Assembly (NCBI GenBank): GCA_013115145.1
Contig: JAAPAO010000228.1
Span: 1-49,631 of the forward strand
Source of the DNA: Perkinsus chesapeaki ATCC PRA-425
Lineage: Eukaryota; Protista; Perkinsozoa
Direction of reading: 5' to 3'
DNA: 49,631 nucleotides
Shown here: in pieces, positions 10,768 to 42,850 of the stretch
How positions within the stretch are numbered: the stretch's first letter is position 1
Layout: every line of letters starts with the position of its first letter
The notes under the pieces: model-generated
The model's database searches: none
The model's input: only the letters and a program-made list of their open reading frames with translations
Told to the model about the DNA's origin: nothing
Translations under genes and position numbers: made by a program

Positions 10768-12800
10768 CTAACGACGACGCATCCTCAACTCGAGACTATT
10801 CGGCATGAGTGTGGCGCCAAGGCGGCCGTGCACTTCATTGATGTCTCCATTGGGTCTGATGTCATCGAAGTGGGACAAGAGCATCGCTAGCAGAATTGTG
10901 GATTCCTTAACACCCATCGCCTGGCCAGGGCACTGACGAGGGCCTCCTCCAAAAGCGTAGTGGTCACGAGAGAGTGCTCGGTCGACAGCAGTTCCATCGG
11001 CGATCAACCAGCGTTCGGGTCTGATGAAATATTCCACGAATAGCTGTGGTACTCCTGCTCACCTGAATGAGGTTCCCCCTTCCTTAACCATGGCTTTGTG
11101 AAACATAGTAGCAACGAAGGTTCCTCGAGGTATTGCGAAACCAGCCAGTGATGTGTCTTTAGTACACTCATGGAGAAGGAGCGGAACCGGAGGTTGTAAC
11201 TAACAAGGAGATACTAGACCAACAAGGCAGAAATACATTTACCCTCAAAGCCTCTAGCACACATGCTTCAACGTATGGCATTCTTTCTATGTCTGTCACA
11301 CTCTCTGGATCACGCCTGAGCTGATCTACTTGTTTCCTAGCTTTGGATTGAGCGTCGGGATACAAGCAAAAATAGAAGAGACACCACGAAGTCGTCGTAG
11401 CTGAAGTTTCACTACCAGCAAGGAGGAACCTACAAAACACCCAATTAGTTGGAATTGAGAGGGTCTAGAAGCTTACGTGATAAGGTTGCCTCGAAGATCT
11501 TCGTGATCCAGATGCAGAAGCTTGCCGACGAGGTCCCGTCTTTCTTCGACATCTCCTCGATTCTGTCCACTACGGCGATCGTTGATTATATCATCACAGA
11601 TACCATACAGAAATCTCGTGCTGCTGTGGAACTGAGAAAGCAATACAGGAACATTACAGAGCATAAATCATATACCTTCTTGATCACCGGGTTAAGGTTC
11701 CAAGGAAAGCGATCCCGCGTGGCCCACGGGACAGCACTGAGCTGCATAGCGTACCCAGCTCCATGCAGGAAGTCCATGAAGACCTCACGTACTTTATCCG
11801 ATCCTTGCCCAAGACTGGAACCTGAAAAGTAGAACCTGAGTATTCAAGTAGAGCCAACCCACATGAAAAGCGATACACGAGAACAATCGTTTCTCATACA
11901 ACCTGCCTGTAGCAGCCAGGTGGTGCTTATTGTATATTTGGAACTGCTCGCTTGCTATCTACATAGCGCAAGGACGACAAAACTCGCTGACACTACACTA
12001 AAGAAAGCCACACAGCTGACCCTGAGGGTTGATGAAGCCATAGTTAGTTCCAAGGACAGTGTTGCAGAAGATATCAAGGGTGCAGAGAGGAAGCCATTCT
12101 GTCGCACACCACGCGATACACCCATCATTAGTGCTTAGCGAATCCAACTGCTTCACCTGAGGCAAGATAACAGCTGATTCAAGGGGCATTGCCAAGACTC
12201 ACCAAGTCTTTCGATATTCTAGACATGTCGAGCACCATGGCGTCCGTGTTCTTCCCATTGAATGCTGGTGCACCTAGCCGCCTGTTACGCTTCCATACTT
12301 CTCCTTCTGTGTTGATCATTCCAGGAAACGGCATTATCTTGTGCTTGTTGAAGCTTCTCATGTATACGTCTGGCCGGGACTTCAGGACTTTATTGATCAG
12401 CTTCGGGCTGGACACCACGATGAGCTGCATTCCCGTAGTCCTGAAAGGAAAGAGAGTCATGTTTTATGAACAGGAATGGACAGTTACCGTATCTGGTAGA
12501 TATCACCGTAGGTGTCGGCAAAGATCTCGAGAGCATGATAGAGCTGAGTGAGAGTACTTGGTAAGAAGCCAACCACTGGCCAGAACTGACAAAAAACCGG
12601 TCCACCGAAAGTGTGCCAGCATTCACCTGAGTCGGCCCCTTCAAAGACGTGCTTTGGTCGGATCTTTGATGGGCGACGGAGCGCCAAAGTTTGAGAACAA
12701 TCACTGACGCTATAGCGGTTGCAAGGATAGGTGTACAGCGGGATAGCAATGTTGTGCGATACTTTGGCAGTAGGTTGCTGAGGACTTGTACTGACGACAT
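10768..12800 (-). CDS. Cytochrome P450 paralog B (multi-exon, apparently intact)
   Basis: Exon 1 12800-12627 is 174 nt, the same length as paralog A exon 1. Motifs WKRNRRL (C-helix), FLLAGSETSA, EALR, FRPERW and FGGGPRQCPG; stop after MRRR at 10768. Intron positions shared with paralog A. Confidence 0.92.
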
Positions 12801-13583
12801 GCAGATGGATGCGAACCTATCATGATGAACATAGAAACACTTCGCATCAGGACTAGAACAGACTAAGGATGGCCAGTGACTGTAGGCTGGGATATCGGCA
12901 GAGAAACGGGTGTCACACTGTGTAGGAATACCGCGAGACAAGAAACGCTCGGATTCCGGGATGGTTTCACTGGGATCAGGAGTCGCAAATGACCAATGAG
13001 TTGAATCGTTTCACCTGCTTATGTCAGACTTCGCTGTCCCTATCGGCAAGTACGAAGCTTTCGTGGAGAGGTTATCGTCAATGGAGGGATGTCACCTCGG
13101 CAATCATTCTGCTGCAAGGCCATCCGTGGACAACGACTATGCCCTATTTATGCGCTAATGGAGCTTATCGCTGTGATAGGTGCTTTAAAGAGGTACCGAA
13201 AAGACGATAGGTGCAAAGAGGAGCCTTAGTATTACTAAGTTAGTAGTGCCCAAGTATTTGTACTGCATTTATGAGTGTATGTTTTGGGCCCATATTCTCC
13301 TCATCGTTATGCAATAACGCTTATCGTGTTCGACTCTTTCAAGCCTTCGGTCGCTATTTTGTACTCGTGTGGATCGACAACTGCACCGGTCATGTTCAAA
13401 TGGATGTTGTCTGATCGCAAACAAGCCCGAGGAATTCGCTCAGTAACTCACGAGCGCCGTGGTTGCTGAGTGTCCGGGTAGAAACTATATGATGCGGCAC
13501 CGAGTTACACTCGACGATCGGTTCTCCAGTAAAGATTCTCCACCCTCACTAGCGTAACACAACGTGGTAAAAGCGGAAACGCA

Positions 13584-15520
13584 TCATCTATCAGAAACGT
13601 GAGTGATTTCGCAAAGTCTCGATATCGTCCGGCTAACAGCCATGCCACTTGCCTCCTGCAAGGCACCCCTCACCACAGGTGACATCTTATCATCGGCAAT
13701 CATCGCGTCCATAACATCTGTACAAAAACAGGACACATGAAACAAGTGCCAGACGTCTCACCGTTAGAGCCGGAAATAGGGCTAAAGATGGCCATGGGGG
13801 AATCAGCGGCGAGAATCCGAACGGCTACCGCCTTGTCGTATAGCAACTCTATCAGCTTTCCAAACCGTCTGCCGCTGCCGAGGCCATCAAGTTCGGCGAA
13901 AATCGGAACCTACACGACTGCTAGGAACTGGAGCAAAAGACTTAAACTGGCTACATTATTGATGAAGAGCGTGGTGTTAACCCTTTGGAGATGGTCCGCT
14001 AAGGCAGAGTAGTCGGTCTCGCCGAGCTCCTTCTCACAGAGCGCATCAAACTCACACCACACTGCAGCTACTTCACCATGCTCGACTTTGAAATAGCTCC
14101 CTTCGATCTTCCTGATAGCACGGGCAATAAAGGGAATGCAATAGTTGGCTCCCACCTAGTAGTAGAGTGCGGCAGAGTGAAGACCCACGGACCATCCACT
14201 AGCCGACCAGGTATCCCGGAAAAATCTGCTTGGAATTCAGCTGCTACCGAAGCGTCGGACGCGGGAAAGTAATATCGGCTCCCGGTCCACTTGCTCGCTG
14301 TGCCGCTGGTTTTTCGATAATCAGTCTGGAGAACTTCTGCAGATGCGAATCCTTCCTCCTTACCTGATGGTCAATTTTGTCCTCGTTAAGGTCGACGACT
14401 ACACAAGTCTGCTCTAGAATCTTCAGCAATGGGGGTATAAAAATATGCCGATTCAGACCTGGGCACAATTAGTCAGAAATCAAGAGGCATTCGCAGCACC
14501 TTTATTAAAAAGATCTCTAGGCTTCGAGTTGGATGTCATAACCATAACAACCCCACGAAGCGCCAAAACTTCAAGGACTTTCGGGAGAATGCAGGCGTCT
14601 TGAACATCAACCACTGAAACCTTGCGAAGCCGGCTGAGTTAGTTCGACCATCGACCGCCGCCTCACTTCATCCAGACAGATAAGGTCAGTTTCGTCTGCA
14701 ATTGTATTTGCCGCTATCTCCACGGGAGTCAAGTCCGGGGCCCTGAGATACCCTCGAACAAACCAACTCGGTAGGCTACGTACTTCTCTCTATCAGCTAC
14801 TCGCATTCGTTCGTGAACTTCTCGCATGAAATCGAAGAAATGCTTGCGTTTGTGTCGCAATTCCAGCTTAGTGTCCCCTACGATGCTTTCGTAGAAGGTA
14901 TCCATCAACATCGTTTTCCCGCGGCCAACAGAGCCGACAAGATATCTATTGGGCAAAGTCGGGTTTAGCTTATCACGCTTTTCTCACACTGAGCGCCTTC
15001 TCAGGTCCTTAGGTTGTTCACAAGTCTGAGTGGGTGCGTTCGTTGGACTCTGTAGCATTCGACCGGGTGACTGACTAGTCCACTCTGGCGCTACATCTTT
15101 GCCGTTCTTCTCTGCCTTGGTGAGATACATTTTAATCCCCTTCTCCCTCATTAGTCGACGATTCTCTATGGGAAGAGTTGACGATGATATGGTCCTGGAG
15201 TACGAACAGAGACCTACCAGCAGTGACCCTGTGAAGATACTCATCAACTTGAGAGGAGTTAAGTTCAGGTTGCTCAACTGTACGCACAGGTGTAACCGGA
15301 GGCCTTATCCACGGAGACTTATACTCCCTTTTAGCTGACTGAAGCCTCCTGTATACCTGACGCCCCTCATTCGGTGAATTAAGGCGCAGCTAACCTTCTC
15401 AAGACGTTTGACTGCTAGCTCTTGTCTGGAGTCCCTCAAGAGTTGGCCACAATTCACCTTATTGCCATACAGAGAAGCCACGCTTAGCGATCGATACTGG
15501 AGGGTTGTCAACGAGGTCAT
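13584..15520 (-). CDS. AFG1: AFG1/ZapE-family ATPase (multi-exon)
   Basis: Walker A YLVGSVGRGKTMLMDTFY, HFFDFMREVH, ALCEKELGETDYSALA, RRFGKLIELLYD and C-terminal AVSRTISRLCEI are all typical of AFG1/LACE1. Start and end coordinates are approximate. Confidence 0.88.
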
Positions 15521-24272: not shown

Positions 24273-27200
24273 TTAAAGGTGGCACGCAATCATCGAGTCA
24301 AGGTCACCTCGAATCACATCCACTGCCTGCCAGACTTCCAGTGTGGTAACTGCATAGAATGCGTTAAGAAAGAGTATCATAACGACCGATCTCACTCGCT
24401 TCTTTCAGCCACTCATCAACCTCGGTGCGCGTTTCTCCTGTTGTGTCCTTCAGATGGGCCACGGCGCCGACGAGGCTAACAATGACCTTCACTAGTTTGC
24501 CTGCTCAACGCATAACTTACTCTCCCCTATCCAGCGATCGCGCTGCCCGTGTTATACTGTTAAGGTTTTTAGATGTCGGATCGGTAAATGGCAGAAGGGA
24601 AGTGCGATAAACTGAAATATACAACTCAGGCAGGAATCAGGAATGATAACTCACATTCCTCCGGAGCACCGTCTGCTCCTTCTTTCTTCATCTCATCAGC
24701 ATCTCTTCTATCAAGTCTATACAGGGACGCAAAAACGCGAGCCAGCATCGTGCTCATCATGGTTGGCTTCTCGGGCATGAACGCCGAAGTTACAAGCCGA
24801 GGCAGCTGACGTTCAAAACGAACCTGACAAAATGCCATCCGAAGAATACAGGCGGAAAATGTCCCACCTTGAGGGCTCCAGCGCTGTACACTGGTGGGAG
24901 AGGAGATGGTAAAGTGTCTAGAACAACAGCCTTGGTCTCATTACGGATGGAGGGAAGCTGAAAATATCATTAATAAAAGAGTCGGTTCATTCCACCGCAT
25001 GTGAAGAGTGAAGATGCAGCGGCGGTTGAAGCCATAAAGTAAAGTGGCCTTCTTTGGGTTGCAACGAAGTTATTCTTACATCTGCAAACTTCGCTATGGT
25101 ATCTCGAACGTCGCCTTTATCATGCATCAAATCCATTGATAACGACAAAGCTGATTGACTAGCAAAGGCCACTGAGGGAATGAAAGTCACTGCGCCACAA
25201 AACTCTGTAGTCCTACCGTCCATGGCAGCGTGCTTGTCTTCATCCAAAGAATTGAGGGCAACTTCGAGTGCGGCAACTTCGCCCTTCAAGCCAGCAACGT
25301 CACCCTGAAGCCATGCGTATGCGTGCAACAATTCATACCGCTCTTTCTTGGCAAATCTTACTGCGTGCTCGGACATAATCGAATCCAATCGCTCAGCGAA
25401 ATCCATTTTCATATCGGCCATCTCATCAGTCACCGTATTCAACTAAATAAAAATGCCTCTACCAGGGATCGAATCTATGCTTCACCACCCACCTCCTCCT
25501 CGTAATGGGCTCTGGCCTTCTCCGAAGCTTCCGCCGCTGCCACTGTGATCCTCTCAGCAGCATCAGTTGCATCATCGAACCTCCTCCCTGTTATCTCAAC
25601 AAGTCTATCGACCAACTCCTCAGTAGAAAGATCTGTAATGAGAAGAGATAATTCTGCCATCTACGAGATTGCTTCCAGATCTCAGCATTCACATCAAATT
25701 AGTTTTTCACTTCCGGCTCGCATTAATCCTACGTACTGAGCACCGGCCGATTCGACCTCTCATAAATGCATTTATAAAGCTGTTATCAATAGATCAATTA
25801 GTGGCAAGTATGAACTGTCTCACAGTGGGACGATAATTTCCCAGCTTTGCCTCTGAAGCCATCCTTCTCACTTTGGCATTCACGTCTTTCTATTTCCATG
25901 GCGCCCTCCTTGGTAGTAGGATCGGGGGTATCTTCGGCAGTAGCAGAATCTTTATCGGGTTCGTAATCCTCGCTCAACCTCGGTTCGGATTCAGAAGCGG
26001 TCACCTGTGCGGTTATTCCGAACTCGCTTCGGCCGAAGATCCACACTTACCTCCGAAGCCTGGTCTTGTTCTCCCTCACTAGAAATCGTATCTTTCGCAC
26101 TCGGAAGATTCTCCTTCTGTTCCTGGTGGCCACCAAGCTGGATCTCTTCAATTGGTAACTTCTCCTCCCAACTTGATAGAGACATCTCCTCGCCCGGAAG
26201 AACTCCTTCATCCGATGAATTCTCCGCAGTGCGGAGCTTATCGGAGATCTTCACATCATTGGCAACATCTGCACTCTCTTCACCCGTACTTCCACTGCCC
26301 TCCTGCGCACTCGAAAGATTCTCCTCCTCCTTAGGCTGCGCACTCGAAAGATTCCCCTCCTCCACTGGTTGCGCACTCGAAAGATTCCCCTCCTCCTCTG
26401 GTTGCGCACTCGAAAGATTCTCCTCCTCTGGTTGCGAACTCGAAAGATTTTCCCCCTCCTTAGGTTGCGCACTCGATAGACTCTCACTAGATTTCCCAGC
26501 TTCAACCGGTACGACTTTAAGCGCTTCAGCAAGAGAAGGGTCCGAGCTCTTAGCACCAACAGACTCGGCCTCGCTCACAGCCTTCTCCACGGCGGTATTG
26601 GTATCGCCCTTCTCTATCCTAACAAGGCAAAGATGGAACAAACGTGATTTACATAGGATTTCGCTGTCTAACAGTTACCGTAAGATTCTCCCCTATATAC
26701 CCTCTCCTATTCAAAGATAATCTACCAACAACCATCATCACGGAATCGAGATGAAATACGGAGCAATTACAATTATTATATTATATAAACGTTTACTATA
26801 TAATAATAAAGTTCTGCCAGGAATGTCGGTCCTAGACTGAAGTCAAGCAACATCGTTCAATCTTCCAGGGAACATTCTATCATTATCTACGACTCAAGTC
26901 TCTGCGATTTCGCACGCATGCACCTACCGCTCGCCCTCCGAACGACTCGTCCAACAAGCCAAATCAGAAATTGGAAATCCGTAGAAGATTCAACTGTTCT
27001 AAAGATCGGTAAGAGTATCTTGGCTTGATGCAAAACTTACGCCTAGTGTGTTGAAATCGATCGAGTAATCGATATTTAAATCCAACATAAACTTACTTTC
27101 CTAGGAACCTCTTCATTTCCGGGAAGTCGTCGATATTATTATTAATATAAAAACCAGCTCCAACACCAGCGGCAGCAGATAAGGCCACAAACCGGGGACC

Positions 27201-27768
27201 CCAGCCTAATGGATAGTAATGTAGGCTACACACGGGACAACCCAGGTTCTATCCCCACCAACCGTAATTAAATCATAATTGTGATGCCATACTCTAGCCA
27301 ACAAAGCCAGGAGAACGATACAGAAAAACGGTTTTCCCCTTAGGTATAAGGGGAAAACCCGAAAACCGAAAACCCGATTCAAAAAGTCCAAAAATGGTCC
27401 CTTAAACACACCCATCAGACATTATTCCATCACACATCGTTTACTTCCCCAAGGCTCGGCTGCCGCGCCTCATGCATTGGACTTGAGGTGACATTTTACA
27501 CTTCAGGAGGCCCAACTCGAAATAGGCTTTTAAACTTGCTGCTGTAAACTGTTTTCTCTATAAACTTTTCCAACTGTAAAGCTGGGCCGAAATCATATCT
27601 CATCGATCAGTAGTAGGTCCCGGCTCATTTATTACGTGGTTTGCTGGCAGCCTGCCTCGCCGCTTCAACGCTTGCTGCTGCTCCCGCTGTCTTCTGAGCT
27701 GATGTTCTTGTCGCTTCTTCTAGAAGATACCGACTCAGACGAATAGCATTTGTTGATGATGATGTCAT
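24273..27768 (-). CDS. MIC60: Probable MICOS subunit MIC60/mitofilin (multi-exon)
   Basis: Presequence-like start MTSSSTNAIRLSRYLL; splice 27635-27206 gives SKPRWGPRFVALSAAAGVGAGFYINN (single TM); long acidic/coiled-coil middle. The C-terminal segments RFERQLPRLVTSAFMPEKPTMMSTMLARVFASLY and ITRAARSLDRGDLVGAVAHL...VDEWLKEA...LEVWQAVDVI match the mitofilin-domain pattern (RF..ASL.P..G..S, RA...L..GDL..A...W L.EA..LE..Q). Several middle exons are unresolved. Confidence 0.72.
26304..26485 (-). repeat. 33-bp coding minisatellite (~5.5 units, one of 30 bp) encoding SSAQP(E/K/V)EEGNL-type repeats
   Basis: Units begin tgcg(c/a)actcga at 26304, 26337, 26370, 26403, 26433 and 26466; in frame within ORF 25991..26641. 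Confidence 0.95.
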
Positions 27769-28306
27769 AGAAAATTTTACGCCAAATAAATGGAAAAAAT
27801 CAAACCTATTCGGAAATGGTAACATCATGTTACTAACCATGAACACCCTACGTGAACATAATGCACGCTTAGAGCTAAGATACTCAACTTATCACTTTTC
27901 CTAGTGTTCTTCTCCCGATACCGAATATGAAAATGAGAGAAGGATGGATTATTGCCACTATGAGCCTGAGTGTCGTGACGCTAAAAAGCGGCACTCCAGC
28001 GAATGTATATATCTTTGATACGATCGGTACCTCCCCATGATTCTAGATCGGGCAAAGCTCTTCTGCCGGCAGATGAAACTTTCGAATGAGTTGACGAAGC
28101 AGGTCCATGGTACCGTTACCAAATGGCGTTCTTAATTTCACTTTGAAATTGCAGTACCTAACGTTCTTGGAATTCACATTTCGCAGAAAAAGCGGAAATT
28201 TTCCAGAAGAAAACATAACAAAGCGACACAGAGCGAACTCAGCTTCCCCACCATAATATTTACTCTGCCTTTCCCAGTAACAATAAAGCTAGAGGTGTCA
28301 GAAACT

Positions 28307-31300
28307 TCACCGTTCCGTTCGCCAAGCGAATAAGCTCCTGATTTTATCCATGAATGTCATCTCTTCTATCTCCTCATCAATTTCCTCATCCTCCTCAGGA
28401 AGCTCTCCCTCCCATTCAGATTCTCTTATTTTCGCTATTCTCAATTTTTCATCCTTATTAGGCATCTCGAACGAATACAAAGGTTCATCATCGTCCCTAT
28501 ATTTACCCTCCAAAGGATGCCGTTCGACAATGGCTGGCCGAGGAGGAACAACAGGCGTCGGGTCCCACCTAGCAGCAATTCCGTGGCGCGTGACGAAAAT
28601 GATATCCGAATAGTGACTTTTTACTAAATAGTTGCCTGATAATCTCGAAAATTTCGCCTACACTCCTACAGCATCCTACACCAGACAAAACTCAATATTT
28701 TAAACCCGTCTGCCGTTACTAAACCCCCCTATGAAAGCTCGAGCTCACCTCTAATAAAGATTGAACGAGGTGAGGGAAATAATCAAGACGCCCAGATGAT
28801 CCAAAGCTCTCCAAAGGCAAATCCGTTCATTACAGTTCTCTGATCTCCTCATGTATATAATCATATTCTCCATTTGGATTGGCAATAATTCTAAGGATGC
28901 CTCCAAAGGACATAGCTGCCAGAATGGCCTTGAATGGTATCAAGTTCAGGAACCGATCGCCTGATGGACTGGTTAAGCATCCAGACTAGTGATCGAAAGG
29001 TCCCGCGTTCGAAGATTGAAGCGCTGAAAGTTCTGTAAAGTTTAGCTTCGCTCCGCCCCTTCTCTATTACTCTCTCCTCCATGTACAGCATAGATTGTCT
29101 GAGAAGGATGCCTCCTTTGACTTAGACGACACCCAACAGCTGCGGCTTGTCGAAACATTTATAAGAAAAATGTAAAGGGTCATAAGTAGAAGTAGGCTAG
29201 GTAACAGTGGCGTCCTCCCCGACACCGCCGTTTTGCCCATTTTGCCGAAAATGCCGGCTTATAATTGAACCTCTCCTCATAAAGTCAAGCCCCCTCCCAA
29301 TTTTGCAAGCCTAAAATGCTTTTAGTACTTCTGGTCCAGAAGTCACGAATTAGGACTCTCCAGAAATCCTAGTCGGAATCCACAGGTTCTAATGAGTCCT
29401 GACACATCAGGAATTCGAGACTTGTTGTACACAGGAAAGTTCGAAACACCGAGCGAACTGTCCTCTTTTTGAAGTCTGAGAGTCAGAATCGATTCATTTG
29501 TAAGAAGGAATCTGAGTAGTAAAATCAGCTAATTGCACGACCACAGTTCACATAGTGCCACCATTCGATCTACAACTAGAATGCCAGCTTAACCAAGCCA
29601 ACGAAGGGCGCAGAAGAGAAACGATACGACAAACTCTGAAGAGCTTATTCTTCCCAGTGTTGCTTTTTAATCCCGATAAAAATCTTAACCAGCTTGCAGC
29701 TGACATCCCCCTTTCCAAGCACCACACCAAATTCAACGAGTTAAAACTCTCATGACTATTACAGAAATAATGACCGCTGCGCCACAAAATTAATAACGAC
29801 CATTTGCATCTTCGAATCGAGACTCCTTTGGTGGGAACCTGTCACACGCACGGTCGAAGCTAGGATACGTTCCAGCATAACCACGAAACTAAACTGAGTT
29901 TTTTGAACTTGATTAACCAAGACGCCGCGGACACGCTCATCAGCCGCCTCAAAATAAGAATAAATACAAACCGTACGTGAATGCTCTTTCCACGAACTTT
30001 GAAACCGGTTGTGAGAATGGAGTGTGAAATTCCCGAACATATTACAAATTTTTCATCACTTTTCTGGTCATCGGCAACTCATCCGGGTTGAGAAGAACAA
30101 AGGCGATCATACCCACACTGGTCAGACCGATCATGCTACCATACACGGATAGTCTTTCACGATCTGAAAGGAAGCACGCTCCAACCTAAGATACTGTCGA
30201 GGTAACCAAGATACGATTGCGCGCTGCGAAGATTATAACTGGAGTCCAGAAAATATATTTCAAAAAGCTGTCTTGTAGTCCAAGGCAACCCTTCCATTAA
30301 TTCGTTGGTGACCAACGTAGTGCACTCCCCTTGCTAAATAAAACTTGACCAGCATGATAAATTATCATGGCTTGGACAAGTTAACTTACCAAGCGAATCT
30401 TAATGACTTCCAACACTAATGTTTTTTACCATCACAATCACTGAACCAAATAGTACGGGAGAGTTCACTCAAAACGACCACTAATGCTAATCGATCGGAT
30501 GATCGATCATAAGATCCCTTACACAGCAAAAGTGCCGAAATTGTCTTCCCTCAATTCCACCACCCCTCCCATGCCTATTACAAGTGACTCTCCTTCCATC
30601 TCTAGTTGACAAAGTCGATCTTCTTGGATTTTCAAAGTAAGTCCAGTTCAGCCTTGCCGCTCGCCGCAGGAACATCTCAGAACACCAACAACCAACTTAT
30701 TAATAATTTCACACAAGTCGAAAATTTCATCTTCGCGACCCTCCCCGAACCCCGCATCACCGCGAAACTCCACTGTGAGGATTCTGCAATGTTTCCAGAT
30801 TTTGCAAATATGCCTCTGTAACCCCCAAACACTACACAAAGACAATGCACTGAAACATTCAATCATTAAAAAACTTCGCTCCGCCATTAATACCCTCTTC
30901 CCTCAATTATTGCTCTTTCCCTTCTAACTTTCCTACCACTCATATAACCTGTAAATAATATAATTCCAGCTCCGATGGGATAAACCCATCTCCAAGCTGC
31001 CGCTGAATTATCCTCAATGGTCGGTCCTCCTGTTGGATTTGCCCATGCTGAAAAAATGATGTCGCCCGGGATCGAACTTAGATCGATAATATAATAGAAT
31101 TCACACGAGCATTTCCGATTTCACCCGTGAGATGTTCTTAAGGCATTCTCAAAGAAATACAGTTGCGCTTGCCTTTGTAAGGAGTCGTCCGACCGGGCGT
31201 CCAGGAACCGGAAAATTTCAGTAGGTTCTCTGATTTGAACACCACCAGGATCATCTCTCACTTATAGGATTCCCAACATCTTTAGATGTATTCCCTTGTG

Positions 31301-31436
31301 CTCCTTCCCCCTTCTCCTTCCCTTCTTCCTTCCCATCCGAGCTTTTCCCCGTGCAAAATGCAGCCCTATTAACACCAATAAAACGACTCTGCCTTAACAG
31401 TGCCGTTCTTGAACCACGACGGAGAGGGGCCAACAT
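28307..31436 (-). CDS. Hypothetical multi-exon protein with a mitochondrial-type presequence and one predicted TM segment
   Basis: Start MLAPLRRGSRTALLRQSRFIGVNRAAFC is Arg/Ser-rich with no acidic residues. Phase-compatible exons give ...WANPTGGP...AWRWVYPIGAGIIYLQ..., ...WECTTLVTNELMEGLPWTTRQLFEIYF... and the acidic terminal exon 28307-28600. No family recognised; model partial. Confidence 0.5.
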
Positions 31437-32015
31437 TTATAAAGAGGAAAACTGCAGCAGCAGAGAAGGAAAGGAGTTTTGGCCAGCTATCCCAAAACCG
31501 AAGTCCATTCTCCCGCCTACCGGTATCAACATCACTCACAACCATAAAATTTACACTCGAAACTGAAAATCCGAAAATCGCATATTTTCACTGCGGCATT
31601 TTCTAACATACACGCCTCGAGTGATGCATGTGGTCGACTCTATGTTGCCGAGTAAAGAAAGATTATTCGAGATAGTTTCGCCGGTCGATTATTAGATCTT
31701 CCGCGAGACCCAACAAGCGCCTTCCTCTCTAGGGATTCGGTGAAAAGATTCTATCGCTCCATTGGAGGAAGCTGAGAAATATTACAGTACTGATTTTAAA
31801 AATAGTCCACCTTTAACACAACAATACATAATCCCGCGTCCATATGGCTTGTGCATGTTGATCCGCCACACTCCCCAAATGAAGCAGCTATGTGAACTTT
31901 CATACCGACTTTTCCCCAACTAATTAAAATTCCCACTCATACACAACACGTATCCCTCCAACAAGAACATCACTAAACATGGTCATACCTCATCATCCTC
32001 TAACCTAAAACTATT

Positions 32016-33045
32016 TCACTCGCCACGAAATTCATACCTCTCCAACCTACTTGTATCGCTCCTAACCTTCAGCGCTGCCTTAATAGCATTCTCAATACTT
32101 TTCCGTCGAACCTCCTCCCCTCTTTCCGACACTCCTTTCTTATTACGAGCCACTTCCACCTTTTTCAATGGAGTAACTTTGGCACTTCCCGTTGCCGACG
32201 GAGTAACTAAATTACTCTTAATTTTCAACCTTTCACGACAATTCATGTCACTCGCAAAACCAGTGTATGATTCAGCACTTTTTTGGTAACATTATTGGTC
32301 CCAGAGCGATCCACACTATATAGAGCTCCCATCTACTTCTCTCAAACTTTCAAGGCTGGGATTTTCGACGTCAGAGTTCTCTATAAATGCTACAAGGACA
32401 CTCATCCACAGTAAACCCGAGAATCAGTACATTCCCTAACGTACACTAACTTTGTTAATAGCTAGCAGGAAGGCCTACTCATGACCTAGTACACTTGCCT
32501 GATTCCCCATGAGTTTTTCTACCACATTTCCTTCCTATCCGCCCCTTTATTACCTCCTCTCGGTGTACTATTATTCTTAACCGTTGTTTCAGTCAATGCC
32601 TTCAACTCATCAATTCCCATCTTTCTAGATTGAATATCCTTCTCTTTAGCTTCTAGTAACCTACCATCCATTCTTAAACCACTCACACTACGCTCCTCAA
32701 ATACTCAATACCACAGAGACATTCTATCACTTCCGCTGCCAACTACTACTCAAGCCAGGAGCAGCAAACCGGTGATACATTATCCCGGAAATAAGATACT
32801 ATATGATATACCGATTATATAGGGAATATATGAGCTTTGTACCATACTCTTAATAATTCTACCTCTCATATCTACCTATTGCACATAGCACCACTTTACA
32901 TTGCAGCCAGACAACGGGGCAATCGCACACTTCGATTTCCGGTCCTCTATTACTTAGCCTCATCATCATCTTTACAAAGGACATCATCCTCAACAGCTGC
33001 CGCATCAAATGATGGTTGCGCACCATCTTCACATTCAACCACCTA
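32016..33045 (-). CDS. Unresolved coding exons with charged low-complexity sequence; either a 3' extension of TRMT2A or a separate gene
   Basis: Exon-like segments VVECEDGAQPSFDAAAVEDDVLCKDDDEAK (33045-32954), MDGRLLEAKEKDIQSRKMG... (~32700-32554) and ORF 32016..32246, with GTAATA donors at 32953 and 32553. Phases could not be fully reconciled. Confidence 0.35.
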
Positions 33046-33758
33046 TGAAACATATATTATACCCAAGTTCTAACGTGACACACTTCACTCATTCCCACTG
33101 TTCACATTGGGGATATTATCAACTAGTAATATTTATCATTATGTAACATAGATATAGAGGACCGAAAATGCCCACGGGCCTCACGGCTGCGCCCAAGTTC
33201 AACGCTACTATATAATATATTTTCTTAACGCCCATTAAAGGATGATACTATTCCATCTTAAATAGAACTATATCTAAGGCTCATAATAGGCCTATAGACC
33301 TTCCCTTCTCAAAACCAGACCAGCTATATTGAGTTTTTTGAAGAAAACCGATGCCACAAAATTTTTCTCGCCCATGCCCCCTTGTACCCTAAAACCTTCC
33401 TTCCCTCCCCCACTCCCTATCATCTTCCCAAGACGCTCGTAGCATCCTCCTTCATATGAGATAAGGCCGCCCATACAGGAACAAAGAGAACAAAAAAAGG
33501 CAATACTGAAACAGCACGGAGCTCTCATAACGCGCTGTGAAGACTAGATTGATTGCAGGTCGCAACTGAAATGAAATAGATGCTCTCTCCAAGTACTAGC
33601 GAAAAATCTAGCTTCAAAATACTTGCATTTTCACGACACAATTCAGCATATATACCGAAATATGATCCCGTTTCTAGATCCATCTCAGCTCCTAAAAGCT
33701 GAACCGAGGAACCAAAGATATCTTTTCCAGTAGAAACGTGGTAAGATACGCTCGAGCT

Positions 33759-36700
33759 CTATCCAGACTCGGAAAGTGTGCTCGGCGGGATACTAGAAAC
33801 CTCATCAGATGACGTCGCTGGAGTGACCCCCGGCCAGCTCTGGTCGAACACTTCCGCTAGAGGCTCGCGATCAAGTAAAAGGATTGCTTCACAGTGATAG
33901 GTATGAGGGAACATGTCAACGGGGATCTGATGATTCAAGTAAAGAGCAGTATGAAGATGAGTAGAGCTTCGATTGAATACAAGTATGGACAAGCATATCC
34001 TACAATCTTCCAAAGAAAAAGAAAAGAGCGGTATGAGATTTTTATACGCTAATACAACACGTAGTAAACCTGCCAAAGTTGAAGGAGTGAAAATTCGGTG
34101 AAAAGTGAAGTTGCTAAAGATGTGTTGTGTAGCGCTTCAACAAAAGCCTCTTTTATCCTTTTGTCAAAAGGAGCGTAGGCGCATATATCCTCCAATCTTC
34201 AGAACATAATGGGAGGAGCGGTATGAATATTACAATAATCTTAGGCACCAATATCCCTCCTTCCTCCTTCATCTCCTTATGACTCTCTACCGTTGTATAG
34301 TCGTTCTCGGGCCTAAACAAAAGCCTATCATTCACCACAAACCGCCACCTCACAGTCACCGCAAGCCTCTCGACTATCAACCCTACAAAACATCTATTTC
34401 TTCCTAGAAAGGCAATCCTGTCTCTCAATGCCTTTCCCATTGTGTCGCCTGTCCCCCTATTACTTTGTTAGTTGTACAACATCCCTGCTAAGTGTATCAG
34501 GATTACAGGACACATATACTATCCTACTTATATAAGAGCATTGCCTTAGACACCTCAATACCTGAATACGATGACCAGGAGACTCGCCATAAAAGTTGAT
34601 ACGCGAGCACGTTACTAGAATTAGTAGTACTAATGTCAGTTACTACGAACTTATTCTACATATAAACCTTCAACACCCTGTAGGCTTATCACATGAGGTT
34701 AAGACAAGTAAATGAGAAGGAGCGTGCATTCTCAACTCTTCAACTTTTCTCAGTCGAATCACTCGATACTCTGCAAATTCGTGGCGAGTACATTGTCACA
34801 AAGCACCTTATTTCTACTCCGTAATCCCCCTCCCCCTATTACATTCGGATGCAGACCAGATCTCGGTGGGTCCACTATAACAGTTAACTTTTGATCTCCT
34901 TTAATATCAGAACATGCTTCCTTAATAACATCCTCTATAGTATCCTCTGCTCGACCTAACATAGCTAAAGGATAACCTACTCACTTCGCTACCCGAAATA
35001 TTAACCAAATATTTACCACATCATCGTACCTTCACGCGCCACGAAATTCTACGATTTTTCCACGTCCCTACAGTGCTCCCCATCTAGAACGGGTGCTTAT
35101 TAGAGTACGCAATAGGAGGCTTTTTGAAGGTAATCAACAACCTAGTCAACTGAAAACTGAAAGCAGTATTTAAAGAGTAAATCTCCAAGAAGTGCGCGTT
35201 TTCCAGTGCCTGATTCAAACCTATATTAATCCTTTATTACCAGCAATGAACTTAACAGCTCCCTCCAGTCCATTAGCCTTCGCAGATGCCTTAGCATCTT
35301 CAACAGCATCAGCAACCAGCTCTAATCCATACACTCGTGGCTTACCATCAGCCTTAGTCCCAAGGATACTAGCAAACACCTACAATCGCCAAGATACGTT
35401 CGACCTTCCAAACGAGCCCAAAGATACGCATTTTCATACTATACATAATTTCCACCCTCACATTACGACGATGCTCAACATTTTCTTCCCGAACCCTATT
35501 AGTTATTCGCACTATGAATATTCCTGTACATCTTATCTCCACCTTACCTGTGTTATAGTACCAACACCCGAGCACACATCCACCACTGCTGCTGGTAGAG
35601 TACTTTGATCTAAGTCCTCTAACTTAGGCATATCACCATCAGGGCTACCAGTGAGGGCCAGCCTTACCTAGACCGGATGACAAGAGTCTTACCCAGAGAT
35701 GCTGTTAGTAGCATAAAATCCTGCTTCAACCACAGCCGAATAGGAACACCAAAATTTTTTTCGCGCGAGGATAATCTTCCCCCCGTTGAAGAACACTACC
35801 GGTAAATAGTGAAGGGTTCGTGCCCATTGTCAATACTAAGATCCTCGGAATATTTCGTCACACAATTCGCTGTCCCCTATTACCGCTGCCGTATAAAGTT
35901 TCTTGCACATAACCACATTAGTCTGGAAAAATGATGCTGGTTGCAGTGGGAACTCCAGCCCTAACATATCCATGGTCACTTTAGTGTCGCCATATATCTG
36001 AACCGCACATGAAACGGTTAATCGATTTGCAAAGATTCTCAATCTTAACATCGCTATAAGCGAATAGGATAGCATTTATATCACGCCTCTCCGAATCGAA
36101 CAGGCCCAATTTCCCAGGCCAGAAGCCAGATACAGGTTTAACCTTCTTCTCCGGTATGCCCCATATGCTTATGTATGTCTATAAGGCCTCAAAGATTCAT
36201 TAGGCTGCCTCTGCAAGGAGGTCGACTCTACGACACGCAGCCCCGATCTATATGAGTCGTATTTTACCACTTAACTATTTCAACCAGAATGAGTCCGCCT
36301 TCCCTACATGATAGAGATCCTCCTTTTTCATATCACACGCATCACACACGCCATTGTTAGTCTGCATAAACACCGAGGATACCGGTACCTGTAATGAGAT
36401 CAAAAATCTTTACAGTGCGTAATAACCGTAAGATACCAAAATAAACAACAACACAGTGCCAGCCTCGCTGCTATACAAACCAGTGGTGAAGAATCGTATT
36501 TTTATGATTAGTCCAATCCGGATGTCGCGAATGGAGACCGCTCGTCATAATTTTTCTGCATAACTATGATGCGGCATTATTAGTTTATACTGTTATCGAG
36601 TATACTATACAGTTGGCCAAAAATTGATAAAATGATCAAGACGCTATGAGATATATTTATACCAAAATATGTATACCCGGAATTTTACCAGGGCTCAGGA

Positions 36701-39700
36701 GATTATGACAACTAACTGAACCCGCTACCACAGCGATACCTCTATACTGGCTATAATCACCAGCCTGGTCCGAGGGGACAGGCTGCACAAGATGAACTAG
36801 AAGATCAAGATATGTTATTAGGATTCTTAGCAGTAAGTTCCCTAGATAGATTAAAATATAATAAGATGACCAGATATTAGTAAATAAGATCAGCCTTCAT
36901 TATTACACTAAGATTCCTATTAGCATCACTTTCCGCCCATGCCCTTATTATACTAGTAGCCTTATCATACGGCTCACAACACATCACCACCATCAACATC
37001 TCTCTACGTGTTGGGGACCATCTAAGCATCACTTGACGCCACGTCCCCGTCTCTAAAACAAAAACAACAACTACGCTCTCCAATCTCATATCATTCGGTT
37101 TATCGATTTGGTGACATGAAAGCGGTCACACCCCTATATTAGCGACATTAAAAAACCGTCGATTTTTGTGAGCATCTTCACTGATACCGTAGAGCCCCCG
37201 CCCTAAATTAACCAACTCTTCACTCGTTACTAATATTCGGAGCCTTTTATCCTTCCCAGCCTTCCCATACTACTTTCATGTCTCGAGAATGGTTTAACTT
37301 GTTCATAGTTCTCCAACACTATCCTCCTCAGCTCTCCCTCTATCTCCTTCATACACGCTGGTATCTACATTATATCTATATTTACCGACCCGGCCCGAGA
37401 TATCCATAAGGGCAATTTAATTCAATTCAACAAATGGATATACGAGACTGATCTAGCGATGCTGACTATGTTGTTCTTCACAGATGTCTTATATGCCACA
37501 GGCCAGACTCCGCAGTGTGATTAATTTCAATCAATATTTCATACTATAAAAACACTTGGGCAGAAAGCTACACACAGAATACCTCTACAAGCGAGCAGAT
37601 GTTACCAATTATATACTGCACAGATCACGAATTTGTCACTAGTAAAATTAGCTCCCTCTCCACACTTCGAACGCCTTACTAATAAGTACGTACAATCCCA
37701 TTCCCTCAGCTGGCAAATAGTTGGAGAAAATTTGGTATAAAAACACTCCCGTTTTTACATGTGGCAAAGCTGCTCCTGACTCTATCAACAGCTCATGTCC
37801 CTCTACTTTCCTAACAAAACCCACCTCCGGCTGAGTACCTAAATGATCGACATTGAAACAGCCTATCAACTAACAAGCCTCAGTTCCCATACCTGCTAGT
37901 TCGATGACGATAACCATCTTTAGGGTGGGCAAGGTGGAAAGATCACCGGGCAGAATTTCAAATCGAAACTTGGATGAGTTGTTCCCCAAAGCGAGTGGCG
38001 TGTGAGCGATCGAGCTTCTGCGTGGCAGTACTCATCGCGCACAAAAATGTTTCTGCTTTCTCAAATGGGAGGAGCCCATTATCGGGAAATCGAGTACGGG
38101 AATTTCAACGGATAAGGAATCATACGAAAATTAGTTTTGCTTGTAGAAAAAGTTCTCCGCCAGTTTTCGCATTTGTAGACGACGCGCATCAAGAATTTGG
38201 CAGTACACCGAGATATTTTTGAACAACATCTAATATCAACGCTTACATCAATAATTGATTTCCCGTCAATTCCCTGCCCCATTTAGTACAATCATAATCC
38301 TTGTATCCGATAGTCAGCTCGCACTTGTTCCTATAACCTTCTAAATTGTCCTCGGGACTGCCCATTATCTCATGTACAATACATCCAGGCTTATTTTTAT
38401 GCACCTATTGAAAATTCCTTCACAAGATACCCCATAGTGAGAACATCACCAAGACGAATATAGTGAGAATTTTGCGAACGATACGGTATCCGTAATAAGA
38501 GACTGCGAGACTGCTCAGGGCGAGACGTACTGAGCCACGGCCAGTGCTACAGTGAGCAATCCTATAAACCATCCTTCTCGAAGAATCTACACCACTTCCC
38601 GGTCAAGTTAGACCTGTTCCAATCAGTTCGAAAGCCGCGGGAAAAACGGACTCGCTTTTAACCGTTTTTTTCAGTCACCGTAAATACTTTTGCTAAACTG
38701 ATAATCTCCTGTCGTGCAAATTCGGGTTTTAAAAATGTGAAGCTTGAACGTAAATATAGATTAAATGAATGTAGTTACGCACTTCCACTACACTCCTTAT
38801 ACAAGACTACAAACTCCTACGGAGAACAAATCAATAAACCGTTCCAACGGGATCTTCACTAATATACTAATATCGATACTACAACATATAAAACTGAGTG
38901 TTCATTCCCTCATCGGGAGATTCACCTTCACCAACAAATTACCAACACCCAGGAGAAGTCCCTTTATTACTCTCGCCCAGGTGGGGAAGCTATACTGTAG
39001 TTTATCACAATGGGCTTTAACCTGACTTATACAAAGATACCTCCAAGCCAGCAATCCAACAGATACCTCTCTCGTGAAGTTCCTAGCGGCATGCATTATA
39101 AACTGTTCTTTTAGTTTAAGCTGTTCAGTATAAGAATATGTATAAAGCGGGGCGCTCTTCTCCAGCAAAGTCTCTGAAGAAACGATGCTTAAGATCAGGA
39201 CTACCCTCACACGGATGTATTACTAATGCCGAGATAGGATGAAAATTTACGGTATAAAATTGGTCCCAAGCCCAAAAGGAAACAATTTATCCCTCTATGA
39301 CATCCTAGTTCGGAAAGTGATATAACAATGGAGAGTTCTTTCAGACTTGCCTCAAAAACGCACGTAGGAAGCCTCAAACTAATCTCCACTATCGCTTTCC
39401 GATCCGAACGATTAACGGGCGCAAAACTGCTCTTCGAGAGGCAAAAAGGATTCCTAGTCCAGGAGGAATTATTGGTAAGATAAAAAGCATCAACTAAGTC
39501 AACCATATATGTTAATATTAGATACGATATAGGGTCCTAGTATTCCCTATTAAAGCATCAAAATGGTCTATATAGGATACGATATAGGATCCTAGTATTC
39601 CCTATTAAAGCATCAAATTGGTCTATATAGGATACGATATAGGATCCTAGTATTCCCTATAAGAGCATCAAATTGGTCTATATAGGATACGATATAGGAT

Positions 39701-41634
39701 CCTAGTATTCCCTATAAAAGCATCAAATTGGTCTATATAGGATACGATATAGGATCCTAGTATTCCCTATAAAAGCATCAAATTGGTCTATATATGATAC
39801 GATATAGGATCCTAGTATTCCCTATAAAAGCATCAAATTGGTCTATATTAGATACGATATAGGGTCCTAGTATTCCCTATTAAAGCATCAAATTGGTCTC
39901 TATAGGATACGATATAGAATCCTAGTATTCCCTATTAAAGCATCAAATTGGTCTATATAGGATACGATATAGNNNNNNNNNNNNNNNNNNNNNNNNNNNN
40001 NNNNNNNNNNNNNNNNNNNNNNNNNNNNNNNNNNNNNNNNNNNNNNNNNNNNNNNNNNNNNNNNNNNNNNNGGATCCTAGTATTCCCTACAAAAGCATCA
40101 AATTGGTCTATATAGGATACGATATAGGATCCTAGTATTCCCTACAAAAGCATCAAATTGGTCTATATAGGATACGATATAGGATCCTAGTATTCCCTAT
40201 GAAAGCATCAAATTGGTCTATATAGGATACGATATAGGATCCTAGTATTCCCTATAAAAGCATCAAATTGGTCTATATAGGATACTATATAGGATCCTAG
40301 TATTCCCTATTAAAGCATCAAATTGGTCTATATAGGATACGATATAGGATCCTAGTATTCCCTATTACTATCCTTTTCATATTTAGCCTTCTCTCTCATC
40401 TGTTTTAATGTTAGATTCTCCATTCTTCTTTGTTTCCTTAATGCTGCCCTCTCCTCGGTCTCGCATCGGACTTTCCGACTTCTCTTATCACCACCATAAA
40501 AGTCGTGAATATCCAACTCGGCACCTTTATATTTCAAACCGGCAACCTGAGATACCAAACCCTTTGCATCTACACACAACCTCCCTTTCACTAAAGAGGA
40601 TCCCTCCAGCACGAGATGCAAATATATTCTCGTGAAGAACTACTTGTTAATGGACCAAATGTTAATTTGTAGGACTGTACGCTTTCTCTATCTTTCCATC
40701 AATCCCACGAGTTCAAGTCAACGATCCTATCACAGAGAGCAAAGACGAGATATCGGACTCAGTGAAATTTATTATTGACCAAATACACCTCACCACACTT
40801 GAATCCTTCTAAGCTTTCAAACAACCCAGTAATCGTCGATTTGGGAACCCACAAATTCTCTCATAAACTCGTGAGAATGAGACCCAGGATTTATAGAACC
40901 GATTTCACCGTAATATCGCCAACTGCCTCCTCGAGCCATTATTACATCCTTTTTAAACTGCGCAGTGTCATCCCCGCTCTTGAACTTTACAAAGACATAG
41001 CGGGCTTTACCAGTAGCAGCATCCAGTGTATCTGAGATTGACATAGCGCCAGATTAACGACATTCCGAACGCCATCCAAAGAGCGCTGGGATATATGAAA
41101 AACTAAGTCTATCAAGAGCAAGATTACGAGGAGCTACGATAGACTACTGTATTTTTAAACGTATGAAGACACTCACTTTCCTATTGACAAAAAATAGGAA
41201 ATTGACATATAAATAGACAAACAGATAGATAATAGTATGAGATATGACCAGTAAGTAACATGAATACAGTACAATTCCTGGACTGCAAGGCGAAATATGA
41301 AAGCTTGGCGTATATTCCAAAAAAGGTTTTAACATCAGTCGAGTGACATCCACAATTGCTTCATTGGAGTGTTGCAAAGAGAGGGGGAGAATAGGTCCCG
41401 AAATACTACAATTAACATTAGATTTGACCTCCTTTTCAAAGAACTCAGTCTTCGCTTTTTCTCCAATGTTGTTGAATTTCTTACAGAATATCTGTAGTTT
41501 CAAAACCTCTCCATTCGGTGCCTGAAGGAATCTTTAGGTCGACCGCGTAAGATACGAAATAGGTTAGAAAGACAACTCACGTCGCTTCCTTCAACCGATG
41601 TTTGTTGCCCGCTTATTGGCTTATTATCAGACAT
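33759..41634 (-). CDS. TRMT2A: tRNA (uracil-54,C5)-methyltransferase of the TRMT2A/TRM2 (TrmA/RlmD) family with an N-terminal RRM; about 17 or more exons
   Basis: In order: MSDNKP start (41634), RRM-like KARYVFVKF, SAPLYTYSYTEQLKLK, EGYRNKCELTIG, EVGFV, TGTWRQVMLR, LEFPLQPASFFQTN, DVCSGVGTI (SAM binding), VDPPRSGLH, IVYVSCNPDTL (catalytic Cys) and PVDMFPHTYHCE. Several junctions were checked for phase (e.g. 40945/40547, 40368/39174, 38970/38390, 35883/35668, 35240/34956, 34842/34562). The 3' end may extend further. Confidence 0.93.
39515..40365. repeat. 55-bp tandem satellite (at least 13 visible copies, interrupted by an N gap) inside a TRMT2A intron
   Basis: Unit gatacgatataggatcctagtattccctataaaagcatcaaattggtctatatag starts at 39521, 39576, 39631 ... 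39961 and resumes after the gap to ~40365. No unique spacers. Confidence 0.97.
39973..40071. other. Assembly gap (run of ~100 N); true satellite length unknown
   Basis: N-run flanked on both sides by the same 55-bp repeat. Confidence 0.99.
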
Positions 41635-42850
41635 AGAAACAAACAGCGGTAGCCTACTCACAAAACGTTAAGTACCCATGTAACAGACCCCTTAACCGAC
41701 AAACTGTGGATAATCGAAAACCATCCACTGCGACTCGAATTTATGCGATAAGGAAGCAAAGTCACGCTGGACTTAATTGAAGTACACCACACTATCGATC
41801 ATATTCATTTACTTCTCGAACAGGCATGGACAGATCCTCGAGCACTAAAATACGATTCTAGACTCAACTGTTGCTGGAATAAGTTTGCTAAACGTGACAT
41901 TCAATTAAGACAGGCGATACTCTAAGGCTTGTTCGAGGCACCTCGCAAAAGCAGGTCACTTTGCATTCATGAGAAATGCTGTTAACAGCTCTCCAAACCC
42001 ATTCACTGGACTAGCCGAGTGCAGCCCCGAGTGTTTTGACAGGCACTTCCAGAAAGCCCATCTTTAATCCCCTGCCAATATAAGACAAGTTTTGTTTGGT
42101 TCAGCAGGTTAGACATATACGCTGGTGCTCGCTAGACCCGGGATCGATCCCTGGTAAGGGATTATATTTGCGCTTCATTTTATTTTCAGTTTTCCGTTTG
42201 TTCGGAACGGCGAGACGAGACGCTTCATCTTAACGAGCCCTGAAGCGGCTTTTCTAACTTTATGCGGAAGTTCGAGTGCTATTCGTTTGACTATTGATCA
42301 CTCACTACTTGCCGTGCGAGAGGCTTCTGTCTTTTAAATTGAACATTTCAAAAGCTCTGATACATGTTCATCCTTGAAACGCCACTAGACAGCGGGGGGG
42401 GGGAGAAAAGTCTCGACTTCAAGTAGCCGTGCAAGAAAGGTATTCGGACAAACTCACAATACTTGGTTACATTCTCATCTGTAATGACATGCGAATGGGC
42501 AGCCGTGCAATGTTATAAACTCAACAGACGTTCATATCAGATGGAATTCTCGACGGTAACAAAGAAGGTGTAAGTAGTTAGGAATGCCTTAGTAAGCTAT
42601 ATGGGGCCGAAGCCTCTAGTTACTCTTGTGACAGTCTATAAGACCGAAAGAGGCGATTACAATGCACACGATACGGACATAGAATCCGATGTGTGGGTCA
42701 TCAACCATGGTTCAGTCCAGTGATAAATAATGAAAACAATCTGATGAAAAGGAGTGCAAGCTCCTATATCTGAAGATATGATGCAGGAACGACACCGATT
42801 AGAACCAACAAGTAACGTTGGTTCGTAAAAATGCACCAGCAAGTGCACGA

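Follow-up and report, generated by a model that had tools for sequence, protein, structure and literature searches.

The stretch of DNA analysed here, 49,631 nucleotides of the contig JAAPAO010000228.1 from Perkinsus chesapeaki ATCC PRA-425 (referred to as the window), carries on its minus strand a series of genes in which long introns frequently begin with the 5' splice site, or donor, GTAATA. The most intron-rich of these is a TRMT2A-like gene (33759..41634, minus strand) with 18 exons and 17 introns, coding for an N-terminal RRM and a C-terminal tRNA U5-methyltransferase. Excision of its 17 GT..AG introns yields a single uninterrupted open reading frame (ORF) of 643 amino acids, running from the ATG at 41634 to the stop at 33759. 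Its exons share 70-100% protein identity with the corresponding locus of Perkinsus marinus, where the TRMT2A gene model carries PF05958. A second gene, MIC60/mitofilin (24273..27768, minus strand), contains 10 introns and, by ORF continuity, encodes 650 amino acids; the orthologue in Perkinsus olseni has the Pfam domain Mitofilin. An earlier note, made from the sequence alone, had listed 14 minus-strand GTAATA sites as donors of a separate class of long introns and had placed nine of them in TRMT2A. Every one of the 14 is present, each exactly at an exon end that is conserved at the protein level in P. marinus and/or P. olseni. The nine in the TRMT2A-like gene are confirmed, the donors come from five different genes, and the GTAATA observation is real.

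All positions refer to this single contig stretch of about 50 kb, and the comparison was made with two short syntenic loci. The P. marinus locus (L001) was reached from a 105-amino-acid ORF of the window via the protein Pmar_PMAR028216, and a P. marinus Logan contig was used to fill an N gap in it. The P. olseni locus (L002), reached via a GFAT copy, is collinear with the window from 12.5 to 33 kb and ends short of TRMT2A; a homology search with the upstream gene gave no match. Exons were called by interspecies tblastx. Orthologous exons have approximately 73-85% DNA identity to both species, in keeping with a Perkinsus distinct from either. The intron bodies are unalignable, so that exons stand out sharply, and orthologous splice sites were located by mapping window positions through ungapped exon alignments. 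A dynamic-programming gene finder of our own, based on codon usage and GT..YAG, was discarded, as it chained across genes and missed real exons. The RNA data consisted of two small public runs, in which a single junction was covered. The curated set comprises 46 introns from the TRMT2A-like gene, MIC60, two P450 genes (P450-1 and P450-2), an AFG1-like gene and three small genes, and all 46 begin with GT and end with AG.

The lengths of these introns are bimodal, with 24 introns of 33-59 nt (median, 45), 22 introns of 110-1195 nt (median, 300) and none between. GTAATA is the donor of 12 of the 22 long introns and of none of the 24 short introns (Fisher p = 1.7e-5), and the difference grows to 14/22 vs 0/24 (p = 1.3e-6) when GTARTA is counted. 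In addition to GTAATA, the long introns use GTAGTA (2), GTGAGA (2) and, once each, GTACTA, GTAAAA, GTAGGG, GTAAGG, GTAAGT and GTAAGA, while the short introns use GTAAGT, GTGAGT, GTGGGA, GTGAGC and further conventional forms. The long and short introns also differ in the frequency of G at -1 (3/22 vs 14/24), G at +5 (6/22 vs 17/24), A at +6 (19/22 vs 4/24) and GG at +9/+10 (10/22 vs 2/24), and the resulting consensus sequences are /GTAATARRGG and G/GTRAGY, respectively, the slash marking the exon-intron boundary. The purine/G-run reported to follow the donor was also recovered: GGG occurs within +7..+25 of 11 of the 22 long introns, compared with 0 of the 24 short introns and with 18% of interior 19-nt windows of long introns, and it mostly accompanies donors with T at +5 (10/15 vs 1/7). 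The canonical 5' end of U1 small nuclear RNA (snRNA) is ACUUACCU; judged against this end, which may not be that of Perkinsus, the short introns fit GTRAGT with its +5 G and the long introns do not, the mean number of pairs being 5.45 for long and 6.79 for short donors (p = 3e-4). This is the opposite of the usual trend. The 3' ends are similar in both classes: YAG is found in 46/46 introns, and T-rich ends and CTRAY-like motifs were seen by eye in long and short introns. As a statistical description, these data support the view that long introns form a distinct donor class in the window; this much of the earlier proposal stands. P. marinus shows a weaker form of the pattern, with GTAGTA at its centre.

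GTAATA is also overrepresented as a hexamer. The window contains 37 copies, compared with 23.5 expected, and the excess is confined to minus-strand copies at 27.6-41.65 kb: from 27600 to 41650, the sense (minus) strand has 19 copies, compared with 5.4±2.3 (maximum, 14) in 500 dinucleotide shuffles, and the opposite strand has 4. Within this region, GTAATA is found at 55% of long introns and at 2% of all GT sites. Base composition predicts that approximately 0.7% of GT sites would read GTAATA, and local AT content, the artefact that the earlier note had warned of, is therefore no explanation. Use of the donor was observed directly at the sole junction covered by RNA, where 36388 and 36907 are adjacent in a contig of run X2 and the skipped segment, read on the minus strand, is bounded by GT..AG, so that the intron at 36389-36906 is spliced from the GTAATA donor at 36906. 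For the other introns, removal from the mature RNA is indicated by the restored ORFs of 643 and 650 amino acids.

The introns of the TRMT2A-like gene, all on the minus strand, are described here from the 5' end of the gene. The first is a short intron of 59 nt (41522..41580) with the conventional donor GTGAGT. It is followed by a 378-nt intron (41032..41409; donor, GTAGTATTTCGGG) that interrupts the RRM and whose upstream exon is conserved in P. marinus with changes of the synonymous type; a candidate "conserved non-coding block" at 41405-41513 was rejected, as it is actually a coding exon of TRMT2A. The 399-nt intron (40547..40945; GTAATAATGG) joins its exons in frame, and P. marinus has an AG at the position orthologous to its acceptor. 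The longest, of about 1195 nt (39174..40368; GTAATAGGGA), contains a 55-nt minisatellite and an assembly gap, and P. marinus has an intron of 269 nt with GTAAGT at the same position. A second short intron, of 45 nt (39022..39066; GTATCT), corresponds to a P. marinus intron of 315 nt with GTAGTC. The 566-nt intron (38405..38970; GTAATAAAGGG) has a 200-nt orthologue in P. marinus that starts with a (GTA)n run. The span 35380..38289 holds the other five long TRMT2A introns, namely those of 451 nt (37839-38289; GTACTA), 394 nt (37365-37758; GTAAAA), 221 nt (37053-37273; GTAGTA, or GTATGG 3 nt downstream), 310 nt (35998-36307; GTAGGG) and 168 nt (35380-35547; GTAAGG), together with two GTAATA introns. 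Of this pair, the 518-nt intron (36389..36906; GTAATAATGAAGG), the only one with RNA evidence, is matched in P. marinus by 335 nt with GTAGTA, and the 216-nt intron (35668..35883; GTAATAGGGGAC) is matched by 210 nt with GTGAGTTTGGGGGGGGGG. The last four are of 285 nt (34956..35240; GTAATAAAGG; P. marinus, 74 nt with GTTAGT and a tRNA relic), 281 nt (34562..34842; GTAATAGGGGGAGGGGG; P. marinus, 409 nt with GTAGGC), 151 nt (34313..34463; GTAATAGGGGGAC; P. marinus, 50 nt with GTAATG) and 307 nt (33927..34233; GTAATATTCA, without a G-run; P. marinus, 53 nt with GTAATT). The previously proposed lengths of 430, 307, 151, 281, 285, 216, ~1195 and 399 nt were reproduced, the first of these belonging to MIC60; the value of 581 nt was not, as the introns concerned measure 566 nt (donor 38970) and 518 nt (donor 36906).

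Further GTAATA donors, likewise on the minus strand, lie in MIC60 and in small genes. The first MIC60 intron (430 nt; 27206..27635) has the donor GTAATAAATGAG, and the P. olseni donor near that exon end is GTACGC. The other three of the four long MIC60 introns have GTAAGT (478 nt), GTGAGA (239 nt) and GTAAGA (122 nt), and the six short ones, of 43-50 nt, all have GTRAGN or GTGGGN. A small conserved gene (29158-28830) contains a 110-nt intron (28961..29070; GTAATAGAGAAGGGG; P. olseni, 168 nt with GTAGTA), and a small gene starting at 33474 contains one of 293 nt (32661..32953; GTAATAGAGG; P. marinus donor, GTAGTG). Two sites were resolved as donors only: GTAATAAAGGGG at a conserved exon end (32548..32553), where P. 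marinus has GTAGTC and P. olseni has GTAGCA, and GTAATAGGCATGGGAGGGG at the end of exon 1 of a gene starting at 30675 (30576..30581), where all three species have GTAATA.

The comparison genes supply further short introns. P450-1 (3747..5445, plus strand) has six of 33-59 nt, and P450-2 (10771..12816, minus strand) has six of 42-47 nt as well as one of about 190 nt with the candidate donor GTCAGC or GTGTGG. The short P450 introns never use GTAATA, as the earlier note had maintained; their donors are varied (GTGACC, GTAGGC, GTAAGT, GTGAGC, GTGGGA, GTATTC, GTAACT, GTGAGT, GTATAT, GTAAGC and GTAAAT). The AFG1-like ATPase gene (13584..14971, minus strand), whose P. olseni orthologue carries the Pfam domain AFG1_ATPase, has four introns of 38-45 nt with GTACGT, GTAAGG, GTGGGA and GTAGCC.

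The long introns are old. At 14 of the 14 testable TRMT2A introns, P. marinus has GT and AG at the exact orthologous base, and the intron positions of MIC60 and the small gene are shared with P. olseni. Their donors have nevertheless diverged between species. In P. marinus TRMT2A, the donors are GTAAGT, GTAGTC, GTAGTA (four times), GTAATA, GTGAGT, GTAGGA, GTTAGT, GTAGGC, GTAATG and GTAATT, and in P. olseni, at the counterparts of window donors that are mostly GTAATA, they are GTAGCA, GTAGTA (twice), GTAATA and GTACGC. Since the same old introns start otherwise in the sister species, the preference for GTAATA is lineage specific and arose in place, and selection acting on point substitutions has introduced or retained the motif, favouring A at +4 in this lineage and G in the sister species. 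In five orthologous pairs, one species has a long intron and the other a short one. The long members have GTAATA (three times), GTAGTC and GTAAGA, the short members have GTAATG, GTAATT, GTTAGT, GTATCT and GTGGGA, and in four of these five pairs it is the long member that has A at +6. Even at a single intron position, donor type thus changes with length from species to species, which disfavours a pure gene or region effect. In base composition and skew, the P. marinus introns match those of the window, and their donors differ, which again argues against AT content as the cause of the motif.

Taken together, these are ordinary, ancient GT..AG introns of housekeeping genes that fall into two size groups with different 5' signals, the signal of the long group probably being read through U1 and a G-run. 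The tiny introns (33-59 nt) carry the conventional U1-complementary donor G/GTRAGY and would rely on plain U1 pairing and on end-to-end pairing across the short intron. The long introns (110-1195 nt) carry the extended donor /GTAATARRGG, in which G is not favoured at -1, +5 is U, +6 is A and purines and a G-run follow; this donor reflects a lineage-specific optimum of donor recognition reached by point substitutions in place. The major spliceosome may read these donors by limited U1 pairing (GUAA, possibly extended with one U1 base bulged), and the downstream G-run, to judge from its position and enrichment, may act as an intronic enhancer that helps them. Two other forms of base pairing were looked for in the long introns and not found. 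A yeast-type "zipper" between an intron's own 5' and 3' ends was no more stable than pairing between different introns (-12.5 vs -13.4 kcal/mol; permutation p = 0.89), and TATTAC, the complement of the donor, was not enriched inside the TRMT2A GTAATA introns (3 copies vs ~2.4 expected from an estimate based on composition).

Several features of these introns are those of conventional major-spliceosome introns (MAG/GTRAGT), including GT/AG in 46/46, YAG, 3' ends that look T-rich by eye, restored ORFs and conserved positions. The long introns differ from that type in having U at +5 and A at +6, no -1 G preference, a purine/G-run and lower complementarity to canonical U1 than the tiny introns of the same genes. 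McCullough and Berget reportedly described G triplets in vertebrates as intronic enhancers near 5' splice sites, mainly in small introns. The long introns resemble these in that G triplets are enriched near the donor relative to the intron interior and accompany a poor U1 match, and they differ in being the long class, in a protist; the triplets here may act in the same way. Roca and Krainer are said to have described bulged or shifted-register U1 recognition at a small minority of human sites. With one U1 base bulged, six pairs with canonical U1 are possible for GUAAUA and likewise for GUAGUA, but such sites would here be the majority of one length class, and a bulged register would favour U at +7, where the long donors have a purine. 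Length-dependent splice signals occur in the short and long introns of Drosophila and in the small introns of the Ostreococcus outlier chromosome. Such genomes share with the window bimodal lengths and different signals, but in the known cases it is usually the long introns whose donor is the stronger, conventional one, whereas here the long class is the less U1-like. Trichomonas is likewise reported to have two intron types (PMC6260720). For Perkinsus, introns have been reported to be GT/AG, 39 to 1622 bp in length and mostly below 100 bp (PMC3101222), in agreement with our set; that paper neither gives a donor consensus nor relates donor to length. Our literature search found no described GTAATA donor, Perkinsus donor consensus or donor-length link.

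Several observations weigh against the proposal that donor class follows length. One gene supplies 15 of the 22 long introns, so that in a single 50-kb window an effect of gene or region may still contribute, and within single genes the contrast is not significant (11/15 vs 0/2 in TRMT2A, p = 0.11; 1/4 vs 0/6 in MIC60). Long introns with conventional donors occur (GTAAGT, 478 nt; GTGAGA, 239 and 214 nt), and in P. marinus the long introns of DSS1 and of an RRM gene have GTACTG, GTAGGC, GTCAGA and GTAAGA and lack GTARTA. A candidate 35-nt intron (44394-44428, minus strand) would have GTAATA and would be a counterexample if real. The gene in which it lies is unannotated, has a start resembling a signal peptide (ATG 44618) and gave no homologue. 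RNA evidence is limited to one junction, and the suggested roles of U1 pairing and of a G-run factor are drawn from sequence patterns.

The main rival to a composite signal of U1 and G-run is a variant or extra U1-like snRNA that pairs perfectly with the long donors, ending in UAUUAC here (for GUAAUA) and in UACUAC in P. marinus and P. olseni (for GUAGUA); GTAATA would then be the strong donor and GTRAGY a weaker one that is tolerated in tiny introns. We regard this as unlikely, although it would account for two things. If U1 is canonical, the long donors pair worse with it (5.45 vs 6.79) and lack exonic compensation (-1G, 3/22), the reverse of the usual situation, and many orthologous donors have changed in parallel, to GTAATA here and to GTAGTA there, as a change in a trans-acting partner would cause. 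Against it, the 5' end of U1 is strongly conserved among eukaryotes, GTRAGT donors are spliced in the same genes, and no U1 was found by Rfam scans of the window and loci L001-L004, in metagenome scans or in the literature on Perkinsus. Two metagenome scans used the exon/donor pattern of the Perkinsus spliced-leader (SL) RNA (PMC3101222); one returned nothing, and the other returned at least 119 chance matches and one real SL RNA gene. Published primers give AAG/GTARATATCAG as the SL RNA donor of P. marinus (PMC3101222). With R at +4 and AU-rich sequence beyond, this donor resembles the motif of the cis-spliced introns without being identical to it, and its GTARATAT fits neither proposed U1 form exactly. 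More broadly, a second 5' splice-site route for long introns, served either by a variant or additional U1-like snRNA or by a U1-independent route resembling the use of the SL RNA donor (GTARATAT), with specificity shifted between GUAAUA here and GUAGUA in P. marinus and P. olseni, seems doubtful to us.

A further alternative, which we consider improbable, is that there is no general class at all and that the excess of GTAATA is local to a gene neighbourhood, as a product of common history, drift or a mutation bias of the region, and would disappear in a genome-wide count. All 14 donors do lie within one 14-kb run of minus-strand genes with an unusual sense-strand skew of G>C and T>A (strong in exons and introns from 26000 to 42000, and the same in the P. 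marinus orthologue), and the nonsignificant within-gene tests and the P. marinus DSS1 and RRM-gene introns point the same way. A local origin is at odds with the spread of the donors over five genes, with a donor type that follows length at orthologous positions and with the other donors found at equal composition and skew in P. marinus, and the presence of one hexamer at 55% of long introns vs 2% of regional GT sites needs selection.

Descent of the long introns from a single mobile element (introners), which would have carried the GTAATA donor and G-run along, as the earlier note had suggested, is contradicted by unrelated intron bodies and shared ancient positions, and we give it very little credence. 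A 5' motif of up to 12 nt (GTAATAGGGGGA) is shared by two introns, and introners, which have a recurring intron-end motif, are known from Micromonas, dinoflagellates and, among relatives of Perkinsus, Amoebophrya (PMC7789003); the window likewise has a recurring motif, in a relative of dinoflagellates. In the window, all-against-all blastn of 14 long TRMT2A introns gave chance matches of no more than 20 nt, with no similarity beyond the donor; no terminal repeats were seen, upstream exon ends have no consistent sequence, and no pattern of target-site duplication is apparent. Comparison with sister species, which the earlier note had proposed as a check, revealed no presence/absence differences at the 14 testable TRMT2A positions, and the orthologous introns are unalignable and have different donors. 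With composition shared, bodies unrelated and positions ancient, AT content and a mobile element both fail to explain the motif. Assignment to the minor spliceosome, as U12-type introns either unaltered or transformed, is just as implausible: a second consensus does stand beside the conventional one, and Physarum is said to have a massively expanded and altered minor splicing system, but the donor is the purine-rich GTAATARRGG and not RTATCCTT, no conserved TCCTTAAC-like branch motif lies near the 3' ends, and the 3' ends resemble those of short introns.

Should the link between donor and intron length hold genome-wide, one genome would contain two donor consensus sequences sorted by intron length, with the long class the less U1-like. 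Sister species would then differ in the hexamer they prefer, making co-evolution of splice sites with snRNA or splicing factors directly testable. Perkinsus is a transfectable parasite that also trans-splices its mRNAs.

The minisatellite in the longest TRMT2A intron (39521..40365) has at least 13.5 copies of a 55-nt unit that repeats the donor-proximal motif ATAGGGAATACTAGG, and it is split by an N gap at 39973-40071. The flanks (39521-39972 and 40072-40365) belong to the same array, with 95-97% matches. The array register indicates a missing length of 54 mod 55 and not the stated 99 N, and the length of the intron at 39174-40368 is uncertain for this reason. The gap crosses no reading frame, and the exons on either side join in frame (codon A/AG) exactly as in P. 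marinus. The array begins right at the splice donor, and some of its units read GTAGGGAATAC, which would make them potential cryptic donors. In P. marinus, the TRMT2A intron at 11002-11201 of L001 has only 4% C and opens with a long (GTA)n microsatellite, of which the GTAGTA donor is the first repeat unit.

Public gene models at these loci contain errors. P. marinus TRMT2A is wrongly split into models of 164 and 517 amino acids, the latter absorbing downstream small genes (L001 10001-16577), and a 781-amino-acid "tRNA_U5-meth_tr" model of P. olseni fuses neighbouring genes (L002 20120-22122). Gene finders that cope poorly with long introns with GTAATA or GTAGTA donors could yield such errors. 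As to gene order, MIC60 and a small gene lie between a GFAT array and the TRMT2A neighbourhood in the window (23694-30031) and in P. olseni. On the P. marinus scaffold GG680905, a GFAT copy is found within 1.3 kb instead (L001 18454-19802), and further copies are on another scaffold (L003).

The one SL RNA gene recovered from metagenomes, on contig Ga0310345_10415892 (L026; 204-240 and 563-684), is of the DinoSL type, with the donor AAG/GTAAATATCA like the Perkinsus S-type, and stands beside a 5S rRNA gene on a contig without U1. In P450-1, an in-frame TAA (4240-4242, plus strand) lies just ahead of the conserved TEWLPLC motif and may reflect a pseudogene, a sequencing error or a tiny intron; the remainder reads through once the six introns are removed. 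A candidate 27-nt intron of MIC60 (25190-25216, minus strand; GTAGG...GGCGCAG) is in frame and free of stops in the window, and its P. olseni counterpart (L002 ~14320-14350) must be removed, as it has an in-frame stop inside. Relics resembling tRNA 3' ends (GATTCGATCCC or GGTTCGAACC, followed by a T-run) occur inside short and long introns and at one intergenic spot (window 25443-25492, 31048-31080 and 42130-42200; L001 14010-14083 and 7035-7085).

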